A DNA stretch of 63,367 nucleotides, filler included, from Basidiobolus meristosporus CBS 931.73 (taxonomy: Eukaryota > Fungi > Basidiobolomycota): assembly GCA_002104905.1 (NCBI GenBank). It is 3 parts of 3 records of this genome, joined end to end, with 100 filler letters (N's around TTAATTAATTAA, not from the genome) between each part and the next. Parts side by side here need not be neighbours in the genome. Positions count along the whole stretch, not along the records: positions 54,062 to 63,367 come from MCFE01001327.1; 2 more parts are not named here. One strand, written 5' to 3'. Under the pieces are notes generated by a model. That model had not been told where the DNA came from and did not search any database. It was given only the letters and a program-made list of their open reading frames with translations. A program made the position numbers and the translations under genes. Below, piece after piece: positions 54,767 to 63,367 of this stretch. How positions within the stretch are numbered: position 1 is the stretch's first letter; the number at the start of each line of letters is the position of its first letter.

Positions 54767-56432
54767 TGTTGTAAGAGTCTTGGAGATATTGGAAGTGATT
54801 GGGAGAACAAGCAGATTATGTGGTTTTCACTTAATGATTTATTGAATGTAAAAGAAGTATTTATACTTTTACATGGTCTTGGAGTAACAAGCATATAGAA
54901 CAGTTTAAGGAAGGTGCCAAGATCATGTGTGCAAAGTTTGGGGCTGTTTTGACAACTTTGAGAATTTTCATGCTCTGGGTACCTGGTATTTTGGTGAAAA
55001 TATTCTAAGTAAATCTCAACAAAGAATTTGGTCAGTATTCTCTAGCATATGAAGGTAATGATCCAAGTGACTATGTAAGGTGAATATTTAGGTGGAAATA
55101 CAAACTTTTACAACACTCTCACACAGCTAAATGCTCATACTGACTAGTCCTAATTTTGCCCTAAGATATTGAAACTTGTCTCTAGCTAATGGTTTGGTAA
55201 ATATGTCTGCAATCATTTCATCTGTAGGACAGTAAACTAAGCTAACTAAGTTATTCTCTATAGCTTCACATAGAAATGATGTCTAATATCTATGAGCTTG
55301 GTTCTAGCTCAAAAAGTTGGATTTCTTCCTAATTGTATACATCCATGATTATCTTGAAATAAAGTAATAGGCGTTTTTTGACATATACCTAAATCTGTAA
55401 ACGTTTTCTTAGCCACATTGCTTCTTTTGCAGCTTCACAGGCTGCCATATACTCTACACATGTGGTAGAAAGTGCCACAGTTGGTTGCTTTCTTGAATTC
55501 CATGAAATTGCTCTTTGACAGTAAAGAAAGGTGTATCCTGTGGTGGATCATCTGTCTTCTGAGTTTTGTCCCCAATCAGCACCAGAGTATCCCACAAGAT
55601 CCTGTTCTGAGTCCTCATAAGTGTATCTTAAGCAGATATCAGCAGTTCCTTTTAGATATCTAAAAATCCGCTTAACTGCTGCAATATGATCAGATCCATA
55701 GTTCTGATTATGATGACTGACAACTCCCACTGAATATGAGATATCTGGACATGTTCCAAGCATGATATACATTAGACTGCCGGCTATAGATTGATAAGGA
55801 AAGTCAGGGCTTTCAGATGGCACCAAGGTCTCTTGATCTGGTTGAGTTTTGACCAAGTTAAGGTTTGTTTCCATTGGGGTAGCTGCCAGTTTACAGTCTT
55901 CCATTTGGTACTTCTTTAGTATATCTTGAGTATACTTGGACTGGCTTAGGGTGATAGTCTGGGTACTTCTGTCTATGGAGAACTTAATCCCTAAGTAGTA
56001 ACTGAGTTCTCCTAGATCAGACATCTTGAACTCCTTAGATAGGCTGGATTTAGCCTCTTCCAATGTTTCTAGGTTATTGGTGCCTATAATAAGATCATCC
56101 ACATATAGAGCTAATAGAGCTGGATTTGCTTTATCTGGCTTATGTTATATACTATAGTCAGCATTACTTTTGAAACGCAAAGATTCTAAATAAGAATTTG
56201 TCTTGCAATTCCAAGCTCTTGGTGATTGTTTGAGACCATATAGTGACTTTTTAAGCTTGCAGACAAAATGGGGGTTATCTTGGTCAACAAACCCATCAGG
56301 CCAATCCATATACATGTCCTCATCAAGTTCTCCATTCAAAAATGCAGTTTTTACATCCATTTGATGAATAAAAAACTTATATTTGGCTGCAATAGCCAAT
56401 ATTAATCTGATAGAATTAAACTTGGCTACTGT
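54767..56432 (-). mobile_element. Copia 3' portion (3' LTR 54767-55115, RNase H, RT), interrupted at 56433 by a gypsy LTR
   Basis: ORFs 55548..56102 (DDLIIG, DLGELSYYLGI, YQSIAGSLMY, ADWG) and 56145..56513 (QMDVKTAFLNG, LYGLKQSPRAW). Confidence 0.9.
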
Positions 56433-57502
56433 TGTGGTGGTGTATAAGTCCAAGGGAGAGATATGTCCAACACTTCTCAAGTGTTTTGTGTGTGGGGTGT
56501 TCACTGGGTGCAATAACCTCTGGCAAAAGCTTGCTAGGAATACTTGGGTTCTGTCTCTAATCTAATGTGAAGGGGAATAAAGCCACAAGCTTGTCAAGGG
56601 AAAACTATTGAGCTACAATCCCCAACTTAGTTGGCATCTTAACAAAAGTATGTGCTGGGTTCAGCATCCTTTGAGATGACAATGTACTAAAGCTTCCAAA
56701 GTCAAAACAACTGTAAACTCCACCAGCAGGGACTTGATAAGAATGTAGCTGTGGTCAATAGTTACAAAGACAGAAAAGTATCTTTGCCTGTACAAGAACA
56801 CACTTGAGAAAGAATCAAATACAATAAAAGATACCTACTCTGAGTATTCCTCACAAGTAGTGCCTCCAAGGTTAGTTAGCTGTCAGCACAGTTTCCTGGG
56901 AGCATCCTGTGGTCTGGGGTTGGAAGTTCAGGTAGCAGCAGGTAGCAGTGACCACACTAATCAACAAGTTGGTATATTGATAAAAAGGATGATGATTTAC
57001 TGTTGAGGGATAGCCTCCCTTATATACTTTTCTTACTGGCTAAGTGATTACTAATCATGGTGTTCCAGAAGGTTCCGTATATCAATAGAACTCTTAATGC
57101 CATCAGAATGACCTAAGAATGTTCTAAGTAGGTGTTGGAAGGTTCTAAGAGGCACAGCACATCCAACCAATCAGGAATCAGTACTGTGAAGCCTGTGTAA
57201 CATAGGGATATCATATATGGTATTGAAATGGTAGAGATGGTGACACAGGCTGACCATGTGTCATGGGTACCAGTACAGGTACTTGCCCAATATAGAAGCA
57301 CTTACTGCTAGTAATCTTACATAAAGTAGGGGATAACTTACGCAATAGGTTAGCAGTTGTAGTACTTAACCGGCTTATGGGATAGTACTGATCAGGTAAG
57401 ATAAATGGGTTAAAACTAAAATATGGGTAGTAGAGAAATAGGTAAGTAGAAAATATGGGAATGAGCACATCTGTCAGTGGGTGTCACTGTCACCCCACTA
57501 CA
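56433..57502 (-). repeat. Gypsy-family LTR, copy e
   Basis: Homologous to copies a-d. The right flank is not the continuation of the copia on the left, so no clean TSD. Confidence 0.9.
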
Positions 57503-57789: not shown

Positions 57790-58658
57790 TTAGGGGGGAG
57801 ACAGTCACCAACAGGTAAAATTTTTATTTCAGTTGAAACAAAGAAGCCAGCACTACTGTTGTAGCTTTGATACAAGAGTGTGTAGCTGAGGGGAATTTGT
57901 ACGTAAGTTTACAAGAAGAGATGATAGTTCTTCAGTGCTCAAGACACTGTTCAGTGGGAAGGGGGGTAGCAAGAGGGGTAAGAATGATTTGTGAACAACA
58001 TCAATGAGGGGAATATGATAAGAATTGATATTCATCATAAAGGGAGTGTGCTGCTTCAGATATTGCTACCAAAGGTCTGTCAAGTACTTGAGGTAGGCCA
58101 GCATGGGTTTTTCTGACCACAGAATATAGTGAGCAAACTTCTTGACTTTAGGATCTCCAAGTATAGTTCTCCAGCAGGAGTCAGGTGTAGTGTGATGTGT
58201 TCTCTTCCAGGTCTTGATCAGTGGGTTGTTGCAGTGGTGAAGTTTGAGATATAATCTGGTTCTAAGGTAGAGTAGTCTGATCTTGTAGGGCATAAGCCCA
58301 AATGCACCAAGAATAGCATGTCTGTAGGGGCATTCAGGCAGATAAGGCACCAAGGATGTAATGCACCAGACTGCAAACTTGTCAAGCTTAGTGCAGTATC
58401 TAGAAGTAAGAGAGAGAAGTGGTAAGCCAAATTCCAGGACAGGGAAGACAAACTGCTTGAGTAGAAGGAGGCAGCTGGGAGCAGAAGTTGTAGGAGGAGC
58501 TACAGCCAGTAGCTTGTGCAGTGCTTGACTTGCCAGGATAATTCTCTTCTTCAGGTGTGTTCCAGAGTCTAGTCCAGTAGGAAGGAAAGGAAAGCCAAGA
58601 TATGTAGCAGAAACTTAAGCAGATAGTGTGCAGTTGTCTAAGTTGATAGGACAACCCA
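57790..58658 (-). mobile_element. 5'-truncated, diverged copy of the telomeric non-LTR retrotransposon
   Basis: Aligns with 58662-59530 of the full copy (ORFs 57853..58038, 58066..58353). 3' junction reads TTA-G6-AGACAGTCACCAACAGG on the + strand. Confidence 0.9.
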
Positions 58659-58725
58659 GGGTTAGGGGGGGAGACAGTCACCAACAGGTGAAATCTTTAT
58701 TTCAGTTGAAACAAAGAAGCCAGCG

Positions 58726-61494
58726 CTACTGTTGTAGCTTTGATACAAGAGTGTGTAGCTGAGGGGAATTTGTAGGTAAGTTAATAAGAAGTGATGATAG
58801 TTCTTCAGTGCTCAAGACACTGTTCAGTGGGAAGGGGGGTAGCAAGAGAGGTAAGAATGACTTGTGAACAACATTAATGAGGGGAATGTGATAAGGATTG
58901 ATATTCATCATAAAGGAAGTGTGCTGCTGCAGATATTGCTGCCAAAGGTCTGTCAAGTACTTCAGGTAGGCCAGATTGGGTTTTTCTGACTGCAGAATAA
59001 ATTCTGCAAACTTCTTGACTTCAGGATCTCCAAGTATAGTTCTCCAGCAGGAGCCAGGTGTTGTGTGGTGTGTTCTCTTCCAGGCCTTAATCAGTGGGTT
59101 GTTGCAGTGGTGAAGTCTGAGATATAATCTGGTTCTAAGGTAGAGAAGTCTGATCTTATAGGGCATAAACCCAAAAGCACCAAGAATAGCATGTCTGTAG
59201 GGGCATTCAGGCAAATGAGGCACCAAGGAGGTAATGCACCATACTGCAAACTTGTCAAGCTTAGTGCAGTCTCTAGAAGTAAGAGAGAGAAGTGGTAAGC
59301 CAAATTCCAGTACAGGGAAGACAAACTGCTTGAGTAGAAGAAGGCAGCTGGGAGCTGAAGTTGTAGGAGGAGTAACAGCCAGTAGCTTGTGGAGTGCCTG
59401 TCTTGCCAGGATAATTCTCTTCTTCAGGTGTGCTCCAGAGTCTAGTCCAGTAGGAAGGAAAGGAAAGCCAAGATATGTAGCAGAAACCTGAGCAGGTAGA
59501 GTGGAGTTCTCTAAGGTGATGGGAGAGCCCAAAGGTACTGTCTTTGCAATGGAAAGCTGGAGATTATTCTTCTGCAGATACTGGTGGATGGTCTGGGAGT
59601 CTTGTTGCACATTGGAGGAGGATATTCTGATGTCATCAGCAAAGAGAGTAACCAGGCAGTCAGCTGAGAGTCTTGGGAAATCATTCAGGAAGATGGCAAA
59701 CAGTATAGGACCAAGCACAGAGCCTTGAACCACACCATTAGGAACTGAGAACACAGCTGATTGCTCACTTGGGTGCAGAATTCTTGCTTGTGGATCCAGA
59801 AACAGGGACCTGACAAGGAGGGTGAGAGAGGTACTGGAGAAGCATTGCAACTTGGACCAAAGCAGATTTCTGTCAACTGAATCAAAGGCCTTAGTAATAT
59901 CAAACAGAACTGAGGGATACTTGCACTGGAGAGAGTGATCTTGGCTAAGTATGACTGCATATTCCAAGGAGAGGCCAGGAACAAAGCCAAACTGTGCAGG
60001 ATGAAACTTGAGGGAGTCAGAGTAGAGCTCCTGAGCAAGCAGAAGCTCAAACACCTTTCTGCAGGTGGGCAGCAGAGATATTGGCCTGTAGGAGCTAGGA
60101 TCCAGGTGCTTTCCTTTACCCTTGTACAGTGGCAGAACATTTGCAAAGGACCATTCCTCAGGAGTAGAAAGCTGGGCTGAGCATTGCTGAAACAGTGGAA
60201 GCAGAAGTGCAGACATGGCCTTGGTACTAGTCTTCAGAAGCTCATAAGAGATTGTGTCCACACCTGGAGCAGTAGAGTTGGGAAGCCTCTTGAGCACATT
60301 ATGGATTCTCCTTTGATCAAGTGCAAGTGGGATGGGCAGAGTCTTGAAGTCAGGATGAAAGCCAGGAGTTGAGTACTGCTTTGTAGAGAAGAAGATGTTA
60401 GCCAGCTGTTCTGTTGAAGGTAACTTCCTGGAAGAGGGCCTCATTGCCCTGTAGAGTCTTGATACTGTTCTTGTTATAGAGTTGGAAGATTGCAGAGGCA
60501 AGGAACTCATAATATGATCCCAGAGCTGAGTATGCAGAGTGTGGTGAATTGCCCTGGAGTGGTGTATTGCTGTCAGGAGGAGTTTCTCTGTTTTTGGGTT
60601 AGGGAAACTCAGGTAGCTTTGTTGCAGGGCTGAAACAATGGATTCCCATTTTCTTGAGGTAACAGCAGTAGTCTTGCATGGCAGTGAGAGGGAGGCAGAC
60701 ACCAGAATCAGATGCTTCACAAAGAGCCAGGCATAGTTGAGATCATCTGGCAGAGAAAGTAGCAAACTGGCAAGCTTCAAGTAGTTCCCAAAGTCTTTCT
60801 TCTGATTCTTGGTAGCTTTGTGGGTGAGCACAGTAAGTTTTGGCAGCTTCTTCTTCACAACTGGTTGCATAGAAAGGGACCAGGCTGGGTGGTCAGAGGC
60901 TCTCAAGGATCCTAGCTCAGCTCCAGAGAATTGCTTAACTTCATCCACAAAGTAGAGGGCAGCAGCAGAAGGGCAGATCCAGTCAACACATCTTTTCTCT
61001 GATTGAGCACCTAGTGCTAGCAGATGGCTTTCTCTCAGGAAGTTCAGTAGGAATGTAGACCTTGGCTTCATTCTTGCAGTCAGAGTAGTCTTGTTCTCAG
61101 GATGGGGAATGTTGAGATCTCCAAGCAAGATAATAGGTGTTGATATAGATTGCTGGTATTGCTGAACTTTCTGGCATATAACTTGCACTTCCTGAAGGGC
61201 AAGACTTGGAGGCAGATAGCAGAGCACCAGACTGATAGTTGGCAACTGGAGAGCAGCACAGTAAGGGGAGTAAAGAGGAACACAGAGCTGAGGAGTATTG
61301 ATGGTAGAAGAGATGAAGCAGATAGAGGAGGTATTCTTTGTTCTAGGAGTAGAAAAGCAATATAGATTAGTCAAAAGTATAGAAGGTAGCTGAACATCAA
61401 TCAAACACAGGAGGGAAAATCTTGAAAGAAGTCTCTCTAGAGTTGGTCTTGATGGCTGTATGCTGTTGCAGTTAAGCAACAGAACTTCAGGTAG
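58726..61494 (-). CDS. LINE ORF2: APE-type endonuclease + reverse transcriptase (no upstream AUG)
   Basis: APE motifs VLLLNCN, LCYLPP, LLGDLN, VDWI, ASDHP. RT motifs YRPISLLPTCRKVFE, QFGF, FDITKAFDSV, GVVQGSVLGPILF, LFADDI, YLGF. Uninterrupted for ~922 codons. Confidence 0.95.
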   Translation of the reverse strand, partial: LPEVLLLNCNSIQPSRPTLERLLSRFSLLCLIDVQLPSILLTNLYCFSTPRTKNTSSICFISSTINTPQLCVPLYSPYCAALQLPTISLVLCYLPPSLALQEVQVICQKVQQYQQSISTPIILLGDLNIPHPENKTTLTARMKPRSTFLLNFLRESHLLALGAQSEKRCVDWICPSAAALYFVDEVKQFSGAELGSLRASDHPAWSLSMQPVVKKKLPKLTVLTHKATKNQKKDFGNYLKLASLLLSLPDDLNYAWLFVKHLILVSASLSLPCKTTAVTSRKWESIVSALQQSYLSFPNPKTEKLLLTAIHHSRAIHHTLHTQLWDHIMSSLPLQSSNSITRTVSRLYRAMRPSSRKLPSTEQLANIFFSTKQYSTPGFHPDFKTLPIPLALDQRRIHNVLKRLPNSTAPGVDTISYELLKTSTKAMSALLLPLFQQCSAQLSTPEEWSFANVLPLYKGKGKHLDPSSYRPISLLPTCRKVFELLLAQELYSDSLKFHPAQFGFVPGLSLEYAVILSQDHSLQCKYPSVLFDITKAFDSVDRNLLWSKLQCFSSTSLTLLVRSLFLDPQARILHPSEQSAVFSVPNGVVQGSVLGPILFAIFLNDFPRLSADCLVTLFADDIRISSSNVQQDSQTIHQYLQKNNLQLSIAKTVPLGSPITLENSTLPAQVSATYLGFPFLPTGLDSGAHLKKRIILARQALHKLLAVTPPTTSAPSCLLLLKQFVFPVLEFGLPLLSLTSRDCTKLDKFAVWCITSLVPHLPECPYRHAILGAFGFMPYKIRLLYLRTRLYLRLHHCNNPLIKAWKRTHHTTPGSCWRTILGDPEVKKFAEFILQSEKPNLAYLKYLTDLWQQYLQQHTSFMMNINPYHIPLINVVHKSFLPLLLPPFPLNSVLSTEELSSLLINLPTNSPQLHTLVSKLQQ

Positions 61495-63003
61495 TCAGGC
61501 AGAGGTTGTAGCTTCTTCAGAGGCAGCATTGACAATGTGACCTGCAGAGTCCCAGAGCTCTTCAAATGGTGCATCACTTAAGTCAGCAAGGAGGGAAATG
61601 GCATGGTTCTTGAGGAAGTATGCCACATCATAGGAGGGGGCTTGTCTCTTGATGGCAGCAAAGAAAGACAGAATGGCCACATGGGCTGGAGGCTTGTTGA
61701 ACAGTAGAGAGTCAGAGGATTCAGATTCTTCAGGCACTATCTTGAAGTCAGTTTTCAGCCAGTTAAGGTTCTTCTTCACAAAGGCAACAAATGGGTCAGC
61801 AATGTTTTGGTCTAGGATAACCTCCAGAATCTTCCCTTTTCTCCAGGCCAGGTTGACAATTCTTGAGAGCTGAATATTGCATGCCTTGAGTGCTTTCCTG
61901 ATGTTGGAGATGGGAGTCCAGGGAACTTGCTTCAAGTACACCACAGTCCAGGTAGAAGCTGGTGGTAGGTTTGCTGGGGGCTTGTAAGTCCTTCTGTGTG
62001 GCAATGGAGCTGCAGTAGTCAGATTGGAGTCCACATTCTCAGTAGAGGGTTTTCTTGATGTGTCTTGCTGAATGGTACTGGAGCTGGATGTGTTGATAAT
62101 TCTTGCTAGAACCTTGCCTGCATAAGTCTGAGGTATAGCTGAGGTGACTGTAGAGGTGGTGGCAGCTGGTGCAGGTGGAGAGGCAGAAACTGAAGCAGGA
62201 ACTGAGGTCACCTGGGAGAAGGCAGTAGAAGCAGGTTTTCTGGGAGGAACAGAGTTCACTATCCAGTTGTTCTGTAAAACACTGGAGTAGCTTTTCTGTG
62301 GAACAGGATCTTGCTCTTGAACAGGAACAGAAGCAGCAGGCTGGGGCTGAGCAGTAGTGGTAAGGCAGTGGCACTCCAAGGAAGCTTTTTGCAAGGCATC
62401 TCTGGCAGTTTTCAGGGCAGTATTGGCTTCATTCTTGAGCTTCTTGCATTGGGCATCCAGTCTCTTGTTTTCAATAGTCAGGGCAGTATTGGCAGCCTCT
62501 AAATCAGCAATTCTCTTCTCAATTGCAAGGAATCTCTGAAGAAATGCATCAGTAGAAGTGCTGGCATCTGGGAGAGCAGTGGCAGGAATAGAGTCCATTG
62601 ACAGTGGGCTTCTTGGAGGCAAGGAAAGTGGACTGGCAGATTCAGGCACAAAAGGAGATATCCTGGCAGGAGGAGAAGGAGTATCCAAGGCAGTAACAGA
62701 GGCAATTCTTGTTGGTGAAGCAGCAGCAGGGGAGGCAAGCCTGTTCAGAAACTGGGCAGGAGAGAGTGCTTGAGGAGAGGGAGTCTTCAGCTTGCCAAGC
62801 ATGTCTTCCATCAGAGTGATACCAATATTCCTGGTGCATTTGCAGAGAAAAGTAAGCTTCCTGAGTCTGCCAGCTCTTCCATTCCTTCTGATAGTTCCTT
62901 TGTTTCCACAGTTGGGGCAAGAAATCTTCTTGATAGACTTGTCAAAGCAATCAAGAACCTTCCTTTCAGGTGTAGTGGGCTCCTGTTGAGGTTTTGGTGG
63001 CAT
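61495..63003 (-). CDS. LINE ORF1 (502 aa from first ATG): N-terminal Cys4 motif, coiled coil, Pro/Ser/Thr-rich linker, RRM-like C-terminal domain
   Basis: CPNC..x22..CKC. Heptad segment FLQRFLAIEKRIADLEAANTALTIENKRLDAQCKKLK. SYSSVL motif. WTVVYLKQVPW..IRKAL..IVNLAW..LEVIL alternating strand/helix pattern. Domain calls are inferred. Confidence 0.85.
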   Translation of the reverse strand: MPPKPQQEPTTPERKVLDCFDKSIKKISCPNCGNKGTIRRNGRAGRLRKLTFLCKCTRNIGITLMEDMLGKLKTPSPQALSPAQFLNRLASPAAASPTRIASVTALDTPSPPARISPFVPESASPLSLPPRSPLSMDSIPATALPDASTSTDAFLQRFLAIEKRIADLEAANTALTIENKRLDAQCKKLKNEANTALKTARDALQKASLECHCLTTTAQPQPAASVPVQEQDPVPQKSYSSVLQNNWIVNSVPPRKPASTAFSQVTSVPASVSASPPAPAATTSTVTSAIPQTYAGKVLARIINTSSSSTIQQDTSRKPSTENVDSNLTTAAPLPHRRTYKPPANLPPASTWTVVYLKQVPWTPISNIRKALKACNIQLSRIVNLAWRKGKILEVILDQNIADPFVAFVKKNLNWLKTDFKIVPEESESSDSLLFNKPPAHVAILSFFAAIKRQAPSYDVAYFLKNHAISLLADLSDAPFEELWDSAGHIVNAASEEATTSA

Positions 63004-63168
63004 ATCCAGAGTTTCAGCTTCAAATTTCAATTTTTGAGATTTCTGGGTGATTTTTGATGGGCGGGATCAAAATTAGGGTTAGGGTTGCGCGCTGTGACTG
63101 CTTTTTACGATCGCAAGGTCAGAACCTAGGAAAAAATAAAATAGTTAGTAAGGTGATTTAATGGATGG

Positions 63169-63367
63169 TTAGGGTTAGGGTTAGGGTTAGGGTTAGGGTT
63201 AGGGTTAGGGTTAGGGTTAGGGTTAGGGTTAGGGTTAGGGTTAGGGTTAGGGTTAGGGTTAGGGTTAGGGTTAGGGTTAGGGTTAGGGTTAGGGTTAGGG
63301 TTAGGGTTAGGGTTAGGGTTAGGGTTAGGGTTAGGGTTAGGGTTAGGGTTAGGGTTAGGTTAGGTTA
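63169..63367 (+). repeat. Telomeric (TTAGGG)n tract
   Basis: 31 perfect TTAGGG units (63169-63354), then TTAGGTTAGGTTA at the sequence end. The G-rich strand points outward. Confidence 0.98.

Follow-up and report, generated by a model that had tools for sequence, protein, structure and literature searches.

The window analysed here is a 63,367-nucleotide stretch of DNA from the fungus Basidiobolus meristosporus CBS 931.73, and its last part carries a full-length retrotransposon without long terminal repeats (LTRs), a long interspersed nuclear element (LINE) with two open reading frames (ORFs), immediately beside a telomere. ORF1 and ORF2 of this element share one frame and are separated by a single TGA, and we concluded that the endonuclease and reverse transcriptase (RT) encoded by ORF2 are probably made by programmed readthrough of this UGA, which would give a Gag-Pol-like ORF1-ORF2 fusion of ~1425 amino acids (502+1+922). 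This reading follows from one in-frame UGA-CU, the stop codon with the two bases after it, that was kept in every relative found. From the anatomy of the element, the conservation of the junction, the lack of a conserved alternative start and the purifying selection on both ORFs, which are what the analysis shows, we infer the occurrence of readthrough, its rate and the activity of the fusion as an enzyme.

The junction reads, on the minus strand, ACC TCT GCC TGA CTA CCT GAA GTT CTG TTG CTT AAC TGC AAC AGC, and ORF2 contains no further in-frame stop. The first in-frame AUG of the window ORF2 is codon 142 (61071), past GDLN (residues 125-128). ORF2 residues 1-240 were modelled with AlphaFold on nine family sequences, and the model had a predicted local distance difference test score (pLDDT) of 85 and the fold of an apurinic/apyrimidinic endonuclease (APE), in which the first strand spans residues 3-12; with a predicted fold that begins at residue 3, an intact endonuclease cannot begin at any downstream AUG. 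The original prediction for this window had claimed the junction sequence, the common frame after one TGA-CTA, the first AUG beyond GDLN, a first APE strand right after the stop and a fusion of ~1425 residues. The sequence was found exactly as written, the arithmetic of the fusion length was correct, and the remaining claims held as well.

ORF2 matched Pfam RVT_1 (E 2.6e-25) and, weakly, Exo_endo_phos_2, and its nearest solved RT relatives were chains of L1 ORF2p (E ~1e-13). The top Foldseek matches of the APE model were the TRAS1 endonuclease (E 9e-11), APE1 and the L1 endonuclease, and the APE residues N8, D126, N128, D171 and D201-H202 were invariant. Residue 33 (~61396-61398) is an invariant Asp in LIDV, at the place where APE-type nucleases usually have the catalytic Glu, and the position of this Glu appears to be held by Asp in the family. 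The LINE-type RT, the N-terminal APE-like endonuclease and the presence of 5'-truncated copies without LTRs place the element among the APE-type LINEs, where its identity to any named element did not exceed ~32% in a protein search.

Relatives were collected by protein searches with ORF2 and ORF1, followed by recovery of the encoding contigs from public assemblies, and the comparisons below refer to nine lineages, namely the window copy and eight further (L001, L002, L003-7, L008, L009, L011, L012 and L013). ORF2 identity was 48-80% for the proteins P0001-P0005, and ORF1 identity among relatives was 35-62%, with 35-37% for L011-L013. A B. ranarum fragment (P0084) and a protein of B. meristosporus CBS 931.73 (P0237, 99% identical) place the family in Basidiobolus. 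Exactly one in-frame TGA was present at the identical alignment position in 9/9 lineages, within junctions that read GCC TGA CTA (window and L001), GCC TGA CTC (L002 and L003-7), GCA TGA CTA (L008), GCC TGA CTT (L009), AAC TGA CTA (L011), ATC TGA CTA (L012) and GCT TGA CTT (L013). In the lineages traced to the ORF2 terminator, the frame stayed open after the stop for 922 codons (window), 924 (L001), 923 (L002 and L003) and 960 (L008); ORF2 was still open at the contig end in L011, L012 and L013, and L009 is a decayed copy with one additional premature stop. The same junction was found in a second, 98.8%-identical genomic copy of B. meristosporus that is truncated at its 5' end (L015, MCFE01000428.1). 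On that contig the ORF1 tail is publicly annotated as a spliced 'hypothetical protein' of 203 aa (K493DRAFT_357826; 413-1715, contig end), and the element carries no retrotransposon label in the public annotation.

Before such a comparison, the simplest reading of the junction was that a dead copy of an element with one ORF had acquired a private nonsense mutation, and the original prediction had named a sense codon in other copies as the observation that would speak for this. We looked for such a codon and found TGA-CT in all nine lineages and in the second genomic copy, with purifying selection both before and after the stop. A fused-ORF relative of ~1400 aa was found neither by a word-indexed protein search nor by an exhaustive search of representative proteins, both very large. 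Nothing remains in favour of a private mutation, which is refuted by the lineage comparison and to which we give practically no chance. One candidate for a fused-ORF relative, P0092 (1996 aa), was rejected as an unrelated tandem-RT gene model, and a scan of JGI metagenomes found no additional lineages.

Synonymous sites in the family were saturated, with a synonymous divergence (dS) of 1.3-2.4 that lay above 1.3 even in the closest pair, and the ratio of nonsynonymous to synonymous divergence (dN/dS) was 0.11-0.30 in the ORF1 tail as well as in the first 250 codons of ORF2 (0.11-0.18 in the ORF2 part), values by which purifying selection is judged to act on both ORFs. The stop was UGA, the base at +4 C and the base at +5 U in 9/9 lineages, while the terminators of ORF2 differed (TAG in four, TAA in one) and the residue preceding the UGA was Ala, Asn or Ile according to lineage. 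Saturated dS, an invariant UGA-CU and variable ORF2 terminators together argue for selection rather than inertia. The codon after the stop was CUA, CUC or CUU throughout and never CUG, and the four residues beyond this Leu were variable. As a control we took the 16 other alignment columns that are Leu in all nine lineages; CTN was used throughout in 4/16 of them and CTG avoided in 0/16, and since the post-stop pattern was matched by none of these columns and its neighbours vary, the constraint lies on the nucleotides. The original prediction had named UGA-CUA as the leaky context, of which UGA-CU stood in every lineage but the A at +6 in only 5/9, and we therefore took UGA-CU as the conserved signal. 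Indels in the variable ORF1 tail never broke the frame shared with ORF2. A second patch of raised synonymous conservation covers the ORF1 FFAAIKRQAP codons (61636-61674, minus strand).

In Ustilago maydis and HeLa cells, UGA followed by CU suffices for efficient readthrough, UAA or UAG lower it, and the first two downstream bases weigh most; A as the third base stimulates readthrough further downstream structures can raise its level, and the motif was reported to act without RNA structure (Stiebler et al., PMC4207609). The features expected of such readthrough are present here as an open in-frame ORF under purifying selection and a conserved leaky context. The combination of a UGA with a hairpin, which is described below, also recalls recoding signals superficially, and the codon might have a fixed amino-acid meaning, as selenocysteine or after reassignment of UGA. 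Reassignment is excluded by the occurrence of only one UGA per ~1425 in-frame codons in every lineage. In 58600-63367 Rfam gave no selenocysteine insertion sequence (SECIS) or other family at E <= 1, the hairpin occurs in only part of the family, and the selenocysteine machinery is described as missing from fungi (PMC4207609), which together make such fixed decoding very improbable.

In a more serious competitor of readthrough, ribosomes would terminate and then re-initiate, or start in some other AUG-independent way, just past the ORF1 stop and so yield a separate ORF2 protein. LINEs are known or proposed to re-initiate, and in SART1 a structure beyond the stop-start site is required (PMC5972666). 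An ATG close to the stop was found in 2/9 lineages (one codon past it in L001 and at codon 5 in L009), and these two are the only lineages with an AUG within five codons, so a conserved start of the kind used in SART1 or L1 coupling is lacking. No AUG is conserved, the lineages having their first ORF2 Met at codon 2, 5, 59, 59, 71, 103, 116, 139 or 142, and in L008, L012 and L013 the stretch from the stop to the first APE strand lacks any near-cognate start. Initiation at CUG or UUG, a second outcome that the original prediction had allowed for, or at AUG found no support given this lack of a conserved start and the absence of CUG after the stop. Re-initiation moreover requires neither a shared frame nor UGA nor CU, though all three are invariant, and we consider it unlikely.

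Removal of the stop from the RNA, through splicing of a short intron or through editing, would allow conventional translation of a single ORF. The CTGAC at the stop resembles the fungal branch-point consensus in 7/9 lineages. No lineage, however, has an in-frame GT..AG interval over the stop with a GTRNGY donor, and no consensus intron across the stop, which had been named in advance as a way out of readthrough, was found in any of them. The first AG after the stop lies at widely differing distances among lineages, L008 has ATGAC at the stop, and conserved coding sequence reaches to ~15 codons upstream of the stop and to 2 codons downstream. Stop removal thus appears distinctly improbable, and readthrough remains the better explanation.

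The hairpin downstream of the stop was examined as a possible aid to readthrough. Its stem CTGTTGC/GCAACAG (61482-61476 / 61469-61463) encloses a 6-nt loop and begins 12 nt past the stop, exactly as originally described. In the window copy the minimum free energy was -11.6 kcal/mol (z = -2.28), with 5/200 dinucleotide shuffles equally good, and p was 0.045 against synonymous-codon shuffles that keep protein and codon usage, so that the window hairpin is only marginally better than the amino-acid sequence would give. The same codon-shuffle test gave p = 0.007 for L001, 0.0025 for L002 and 0.0005 for L003. A tree of the ORF1 tail and ORF2 head splits the family into a clade of the window copy with L009, L001, L003/6 and L002, and a group of L008, L011, L013 and L012. 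For the window clade RNAalifold gave an 11-bp consensus stem from 8 nt after the stop, in which four pairs stay paired through two-sided changes, such as G-C/A-U/G-U at a Leu/Asn third-position pair. Support for the stem is partial: conservation and covariation, with compensatory changes, were found in one clade, but in the window copy the stem is marginal, and four lineages lack it. No other conserved structure was found within 120 nt of the stop in L008, L011, L012 and L013, and the hairpin, missing from this whole second group, lies outside the core signal. A clade-specific enhancer of readthrough is a plausible role for it on this pattern of changes.

If the reading is correct, a single mRNA would be translated from the ORF1 AUG, and most ribosomes would terminate at the UGA and release ORF1p, while a minority, perhaps a few percent, would pair a near-cognate tRNA with the UGA and continue to give ORF1-linker-APE-RT. 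The frequency of readthrough would then set a ratio like that of Gag to Gag-Pol, and in the window clade the hairpin ~8 nt downstream probably raises the rate. The fusion would be the active enzyme and, more speculatively, might co-assemble with oligomers of ORF1p by way of the coiled coil in ORF1. ORF1 has an N-terminal CxxC...CxC motif, a coiled coil and Pro/Ser-rich linkers, and its C-terminal part combines a conserved beta-alpha-beta-beta-alpha domain, similar in topology to the RNA recognition motif (RRM), with a helical domain. The last 12-20 aa before the stop are variable and predicted to be disordered, as expected of a tolerated linker. Searches with ORF1 gave no Pfam or solved relative and no detectable homologue outside the family; the RRM-like topology had no significant fold match in the PDB, and a search with the C-terminal domain returned only the B. 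meristosporus protein. By its domain make-up, ORF1p is presumably an RNA-binding or chaperone protein.

Several points weigh against readthrough and were set beside the evidence for it. Around the stop, synonymous sites were not conserved in excess across the family, UGA-CU itself apart. The hairpin was weak in the decayed L009 (codon-shuffle p 0.14), and L008, L011, L012 and L013 are without it. All nine lineages belong to a single fungal genus or near relatives of it, and their independence is incomplete. In favour of readthrough, the DNA runs of the source organism, which contain many copies, showed no variant at 61492-61497 among the 40 differences listed, to which 28 weaker ones are to be added. 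No RNA sequencing run was found to contain the element, and the fusion is predicted from sequence comparison. AUG-independent termination-reinitiation of a LINE ORF2 has been proposed for L1 (PMC5972666) and remains an alternative on sequence alone, though a less probable one that accounts for none of the three invariants (frame, UGA and CU). We nevertheless regard readthrough as the probable explanation.

The closest known systems for the signal are the cellular genes with a short UGA-CU(A) motif (Pgk1, Art1 and Rpe1 of U. maydis, and human LDHB and MDH1), which have the same stop and the same two next bases (PMC4207609), together with the UGA-C signal of Sindbis virus. In those cellular genes the extension is a short C-terminal piece, for example a peroxisomal signal, whereas in the LINE it is a whole endonuclease and RT of 922 aa. 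For the overall arrangement, the nearest parallel is the Gag-stop-Pol design of retroviruses and LTR elements, in which a structural or RNA-binding ORF and a polymerase ORF lie in one frame, separated by one stop, with a low ratio of fusion, and in which an RNA structure lies ~8 nt past the stop, as it does here in one clade. Gag-stop-Pol readthrough is used by murine leukaemia virus (MuLV). A fungal example is Candida albicans Tca2, where a stop codon lies between gag and pol (PMC4700185, PMC7175516). Unlike these, our element is non-LTR, has no protease and uses UGA-CU with a simple hairpin in place of UAG plus a pseudoknot; with no protease to free the enzyme, the fusion would have to work as it is.

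Among LINEs, L1 is proposed to use unconventional termination-reinitiation, and SART1 uses UAAUG coupling (PMC5972666). Both resemble our element in having a bicistronic RNA from which ORF2 is needed in small amounts, but they give separate ORF2 proteins for which a shared frame is not needed, whereas here frame, stop and the +4 and +5 bases are conserved and a start codon is not. The strategies described for ORF2 of non-LTR elements are re-initiation, coupling, frameshift, separate initiation and 2A peptides, and a search of full-text literature, with subscription journals and Repbase notes outside its scope, brought up no report of readthrough for such elements. The UGA-CU(A) signal and the Gag-stop-Pol logic are known, and their carrier here is a non-LTR element, whose probable readthrough is well supported by comparison. 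How ORF2 is translated from a bicistronic LINE RNA, and the cis preference of ORF2p, are old and partly answered questions. If our reading is true, an obligatory ORF1-ORF2 fusion would be a counter-example to termination-reinitiation models, non-LTR elements too would have reached the Gag-Pol ratio device, and the UGA-CU motif would reach beyond extensions of metabolic enzymes to a transposable element of an early-diverging fungus.

The terminal (TTAGGG)n tract identifies the end of the piece as a chromosome end, and the full copy adjoins this tract with its 5' end distal, a truncated copy lying head-to-tail behind it. The 3' end is a C-run followed by CCCTAACCC, with no poly(A), and contig comparison showed the same ending in relatives, whose contigs pass from the 3' end of the element into CCCTAACCCTAA or into the next copy; in L004 it runs into the 5' end of the next copy (CATCCATCC...TTAAATTAAC). 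Joints in the DNA runs of the source organism carry TAGGGGGG fillers. Insertion in one orientation at telomere repeats was accordingly seen in the window copy, in the contigs of relatives and in the joints of the DNA runs. The telomeric position, the telomere-like 3' end and the fillers suggest, by analogy, that the element primes on the telomeric G-strand, as insect telomere LINEs do.

Telomere-like units also occur inside the element. The CCCTAACCC at the ORF2 FPNP codons (TTC CCT AAC CCA) shows the strongest conservation of synonymous sites in the element, in 7/7 lineages covering it, and another unit lies in the 5' untranslated region (UTR; 63076-63084), B. ranarum included. Both read GGGTTAGGG on the G strand of the chromosome, pointing endwards, and by their sequence could be seeds for telomerase after erosion or internal priming sites. 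In the 3' UTR, AATAAA, a hairpin CACC-NNNN-GGTG with variable loop and the C-run are conserved across lineages, and this region may be a recognition element for the RT. TRAS1 and SART1 of Bombyx, HeT-A and TART of Drosophila and Cnl1 of Cryptococcus similarly have copies in or under telomere repeats, arranged head-to-tail with the 3' end centromere-ward, and the best structural match of the APE model is from TRAS1. Our element is unlike them in its lack of poly(A), its end of C-run and CCCTAACCC, and its ORF1 without detectable homologue outside the family. In its telomeric setting the element may be a fungal counterpart of the telomere LINEs of insects.

Taken as one, these observations lead us to favour, with rather less assurance than readthrough itself, a LINE that would make its endonuclease and RT only as an ORF1-ORF2 fusion by UGA-CU readthrough, a Gag-Pol solution arisen independently and without a protease. 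The coiled coil and RNA-binding domain of ORF1 would tether the enzyme to its own RNA, and the telomere units in the 5' UTR, in mid-ORF2 and at the 3' end would suit it to chromosome ends, where they could prime on the G-overhang or seed telomerase.

Table 1. Positions of the element and its parts in the window
Feature	Position	Strand	Remarks
Telomere tract, terminal	63167..63367	-	(CCCTAA)n on minus, (TTAGGG)n (~200 bp) on plus up to the end of the piece; read directly
Non-LTR retrotransposon, full-length, ~4.5 kb	58659..63166	-	5' end towards chromosome end; no poly(A); 3' end ...CTCCCCCCCTAACCC
5' UTR, ~160 nt	63004..63166	-	Contains AACCCTAACCCTAA (CCCTAACCC at 63076-63084); also in B. ranarum fragment L014
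ORF1, 502 aa	61498..63003	-	ATG at 63003; CxxC...CxC, coiled coil, Pro/Ser-rich linkers, RRM-like C-terminal domain
Stop and context UGA CUA	61492..61497	-	TGA at 61497-61495; UGA and CU (+4/+5) invariant, 9/9 lineages
Hairpin CTGTTGC-TTAACT-GCAACAG	61463..61482	-	Clade consensus is an 11-bp stem from 8 nt after stop
ORF2, 922 codons + TAG, ORF1 frame	58726..61494	-	Codons 61494-58729
APE endonuclease in ORF2, residues ~1-215	61494-60850	-	
RT (Pfam RVT_1) in ORF2, residues 466-678	60099-59461	-	
CCCTAACCC within ORF2 FPNP codons	60596..60604	-	Synonymous sites frozen, 7/7 lineages covering the site
3' UTR, 67 nt	58659..58725	-	AATAAA, small hairpin CACC-TGTT-GGTG, C-run and telomere-like end
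Second copy, 5'-truncated, last 862 bp	57797..58658	-	93% identical; head-to-tail behind full copy

The remaining features of the element and its surroundings agree with those of a mobile LINE (Table 1). No LTRs were present, the 862-bp 3' fragment lies beside the full copy, L015 is truncated at its 5' end, and in DNA runs of the source organism the summed contig depth climbs ~10-fold towards the 3' end of the element. On this sequence evidence we regard the element as an active, telomere-associated LINE family of Basidiobolus. The Logan contig of L008 finishes at its 3' end in AGATCGGAAGAGC, an Illumina adapter remnant that lies outside the element. The subtelomere beyond the truncated copy is unrelated DNA with a copia-like remnant, where two ORFs of 184 and 122 aa (55548-56513, minus strand) resemble a decayed Ty1/copia reverse transcriptase.

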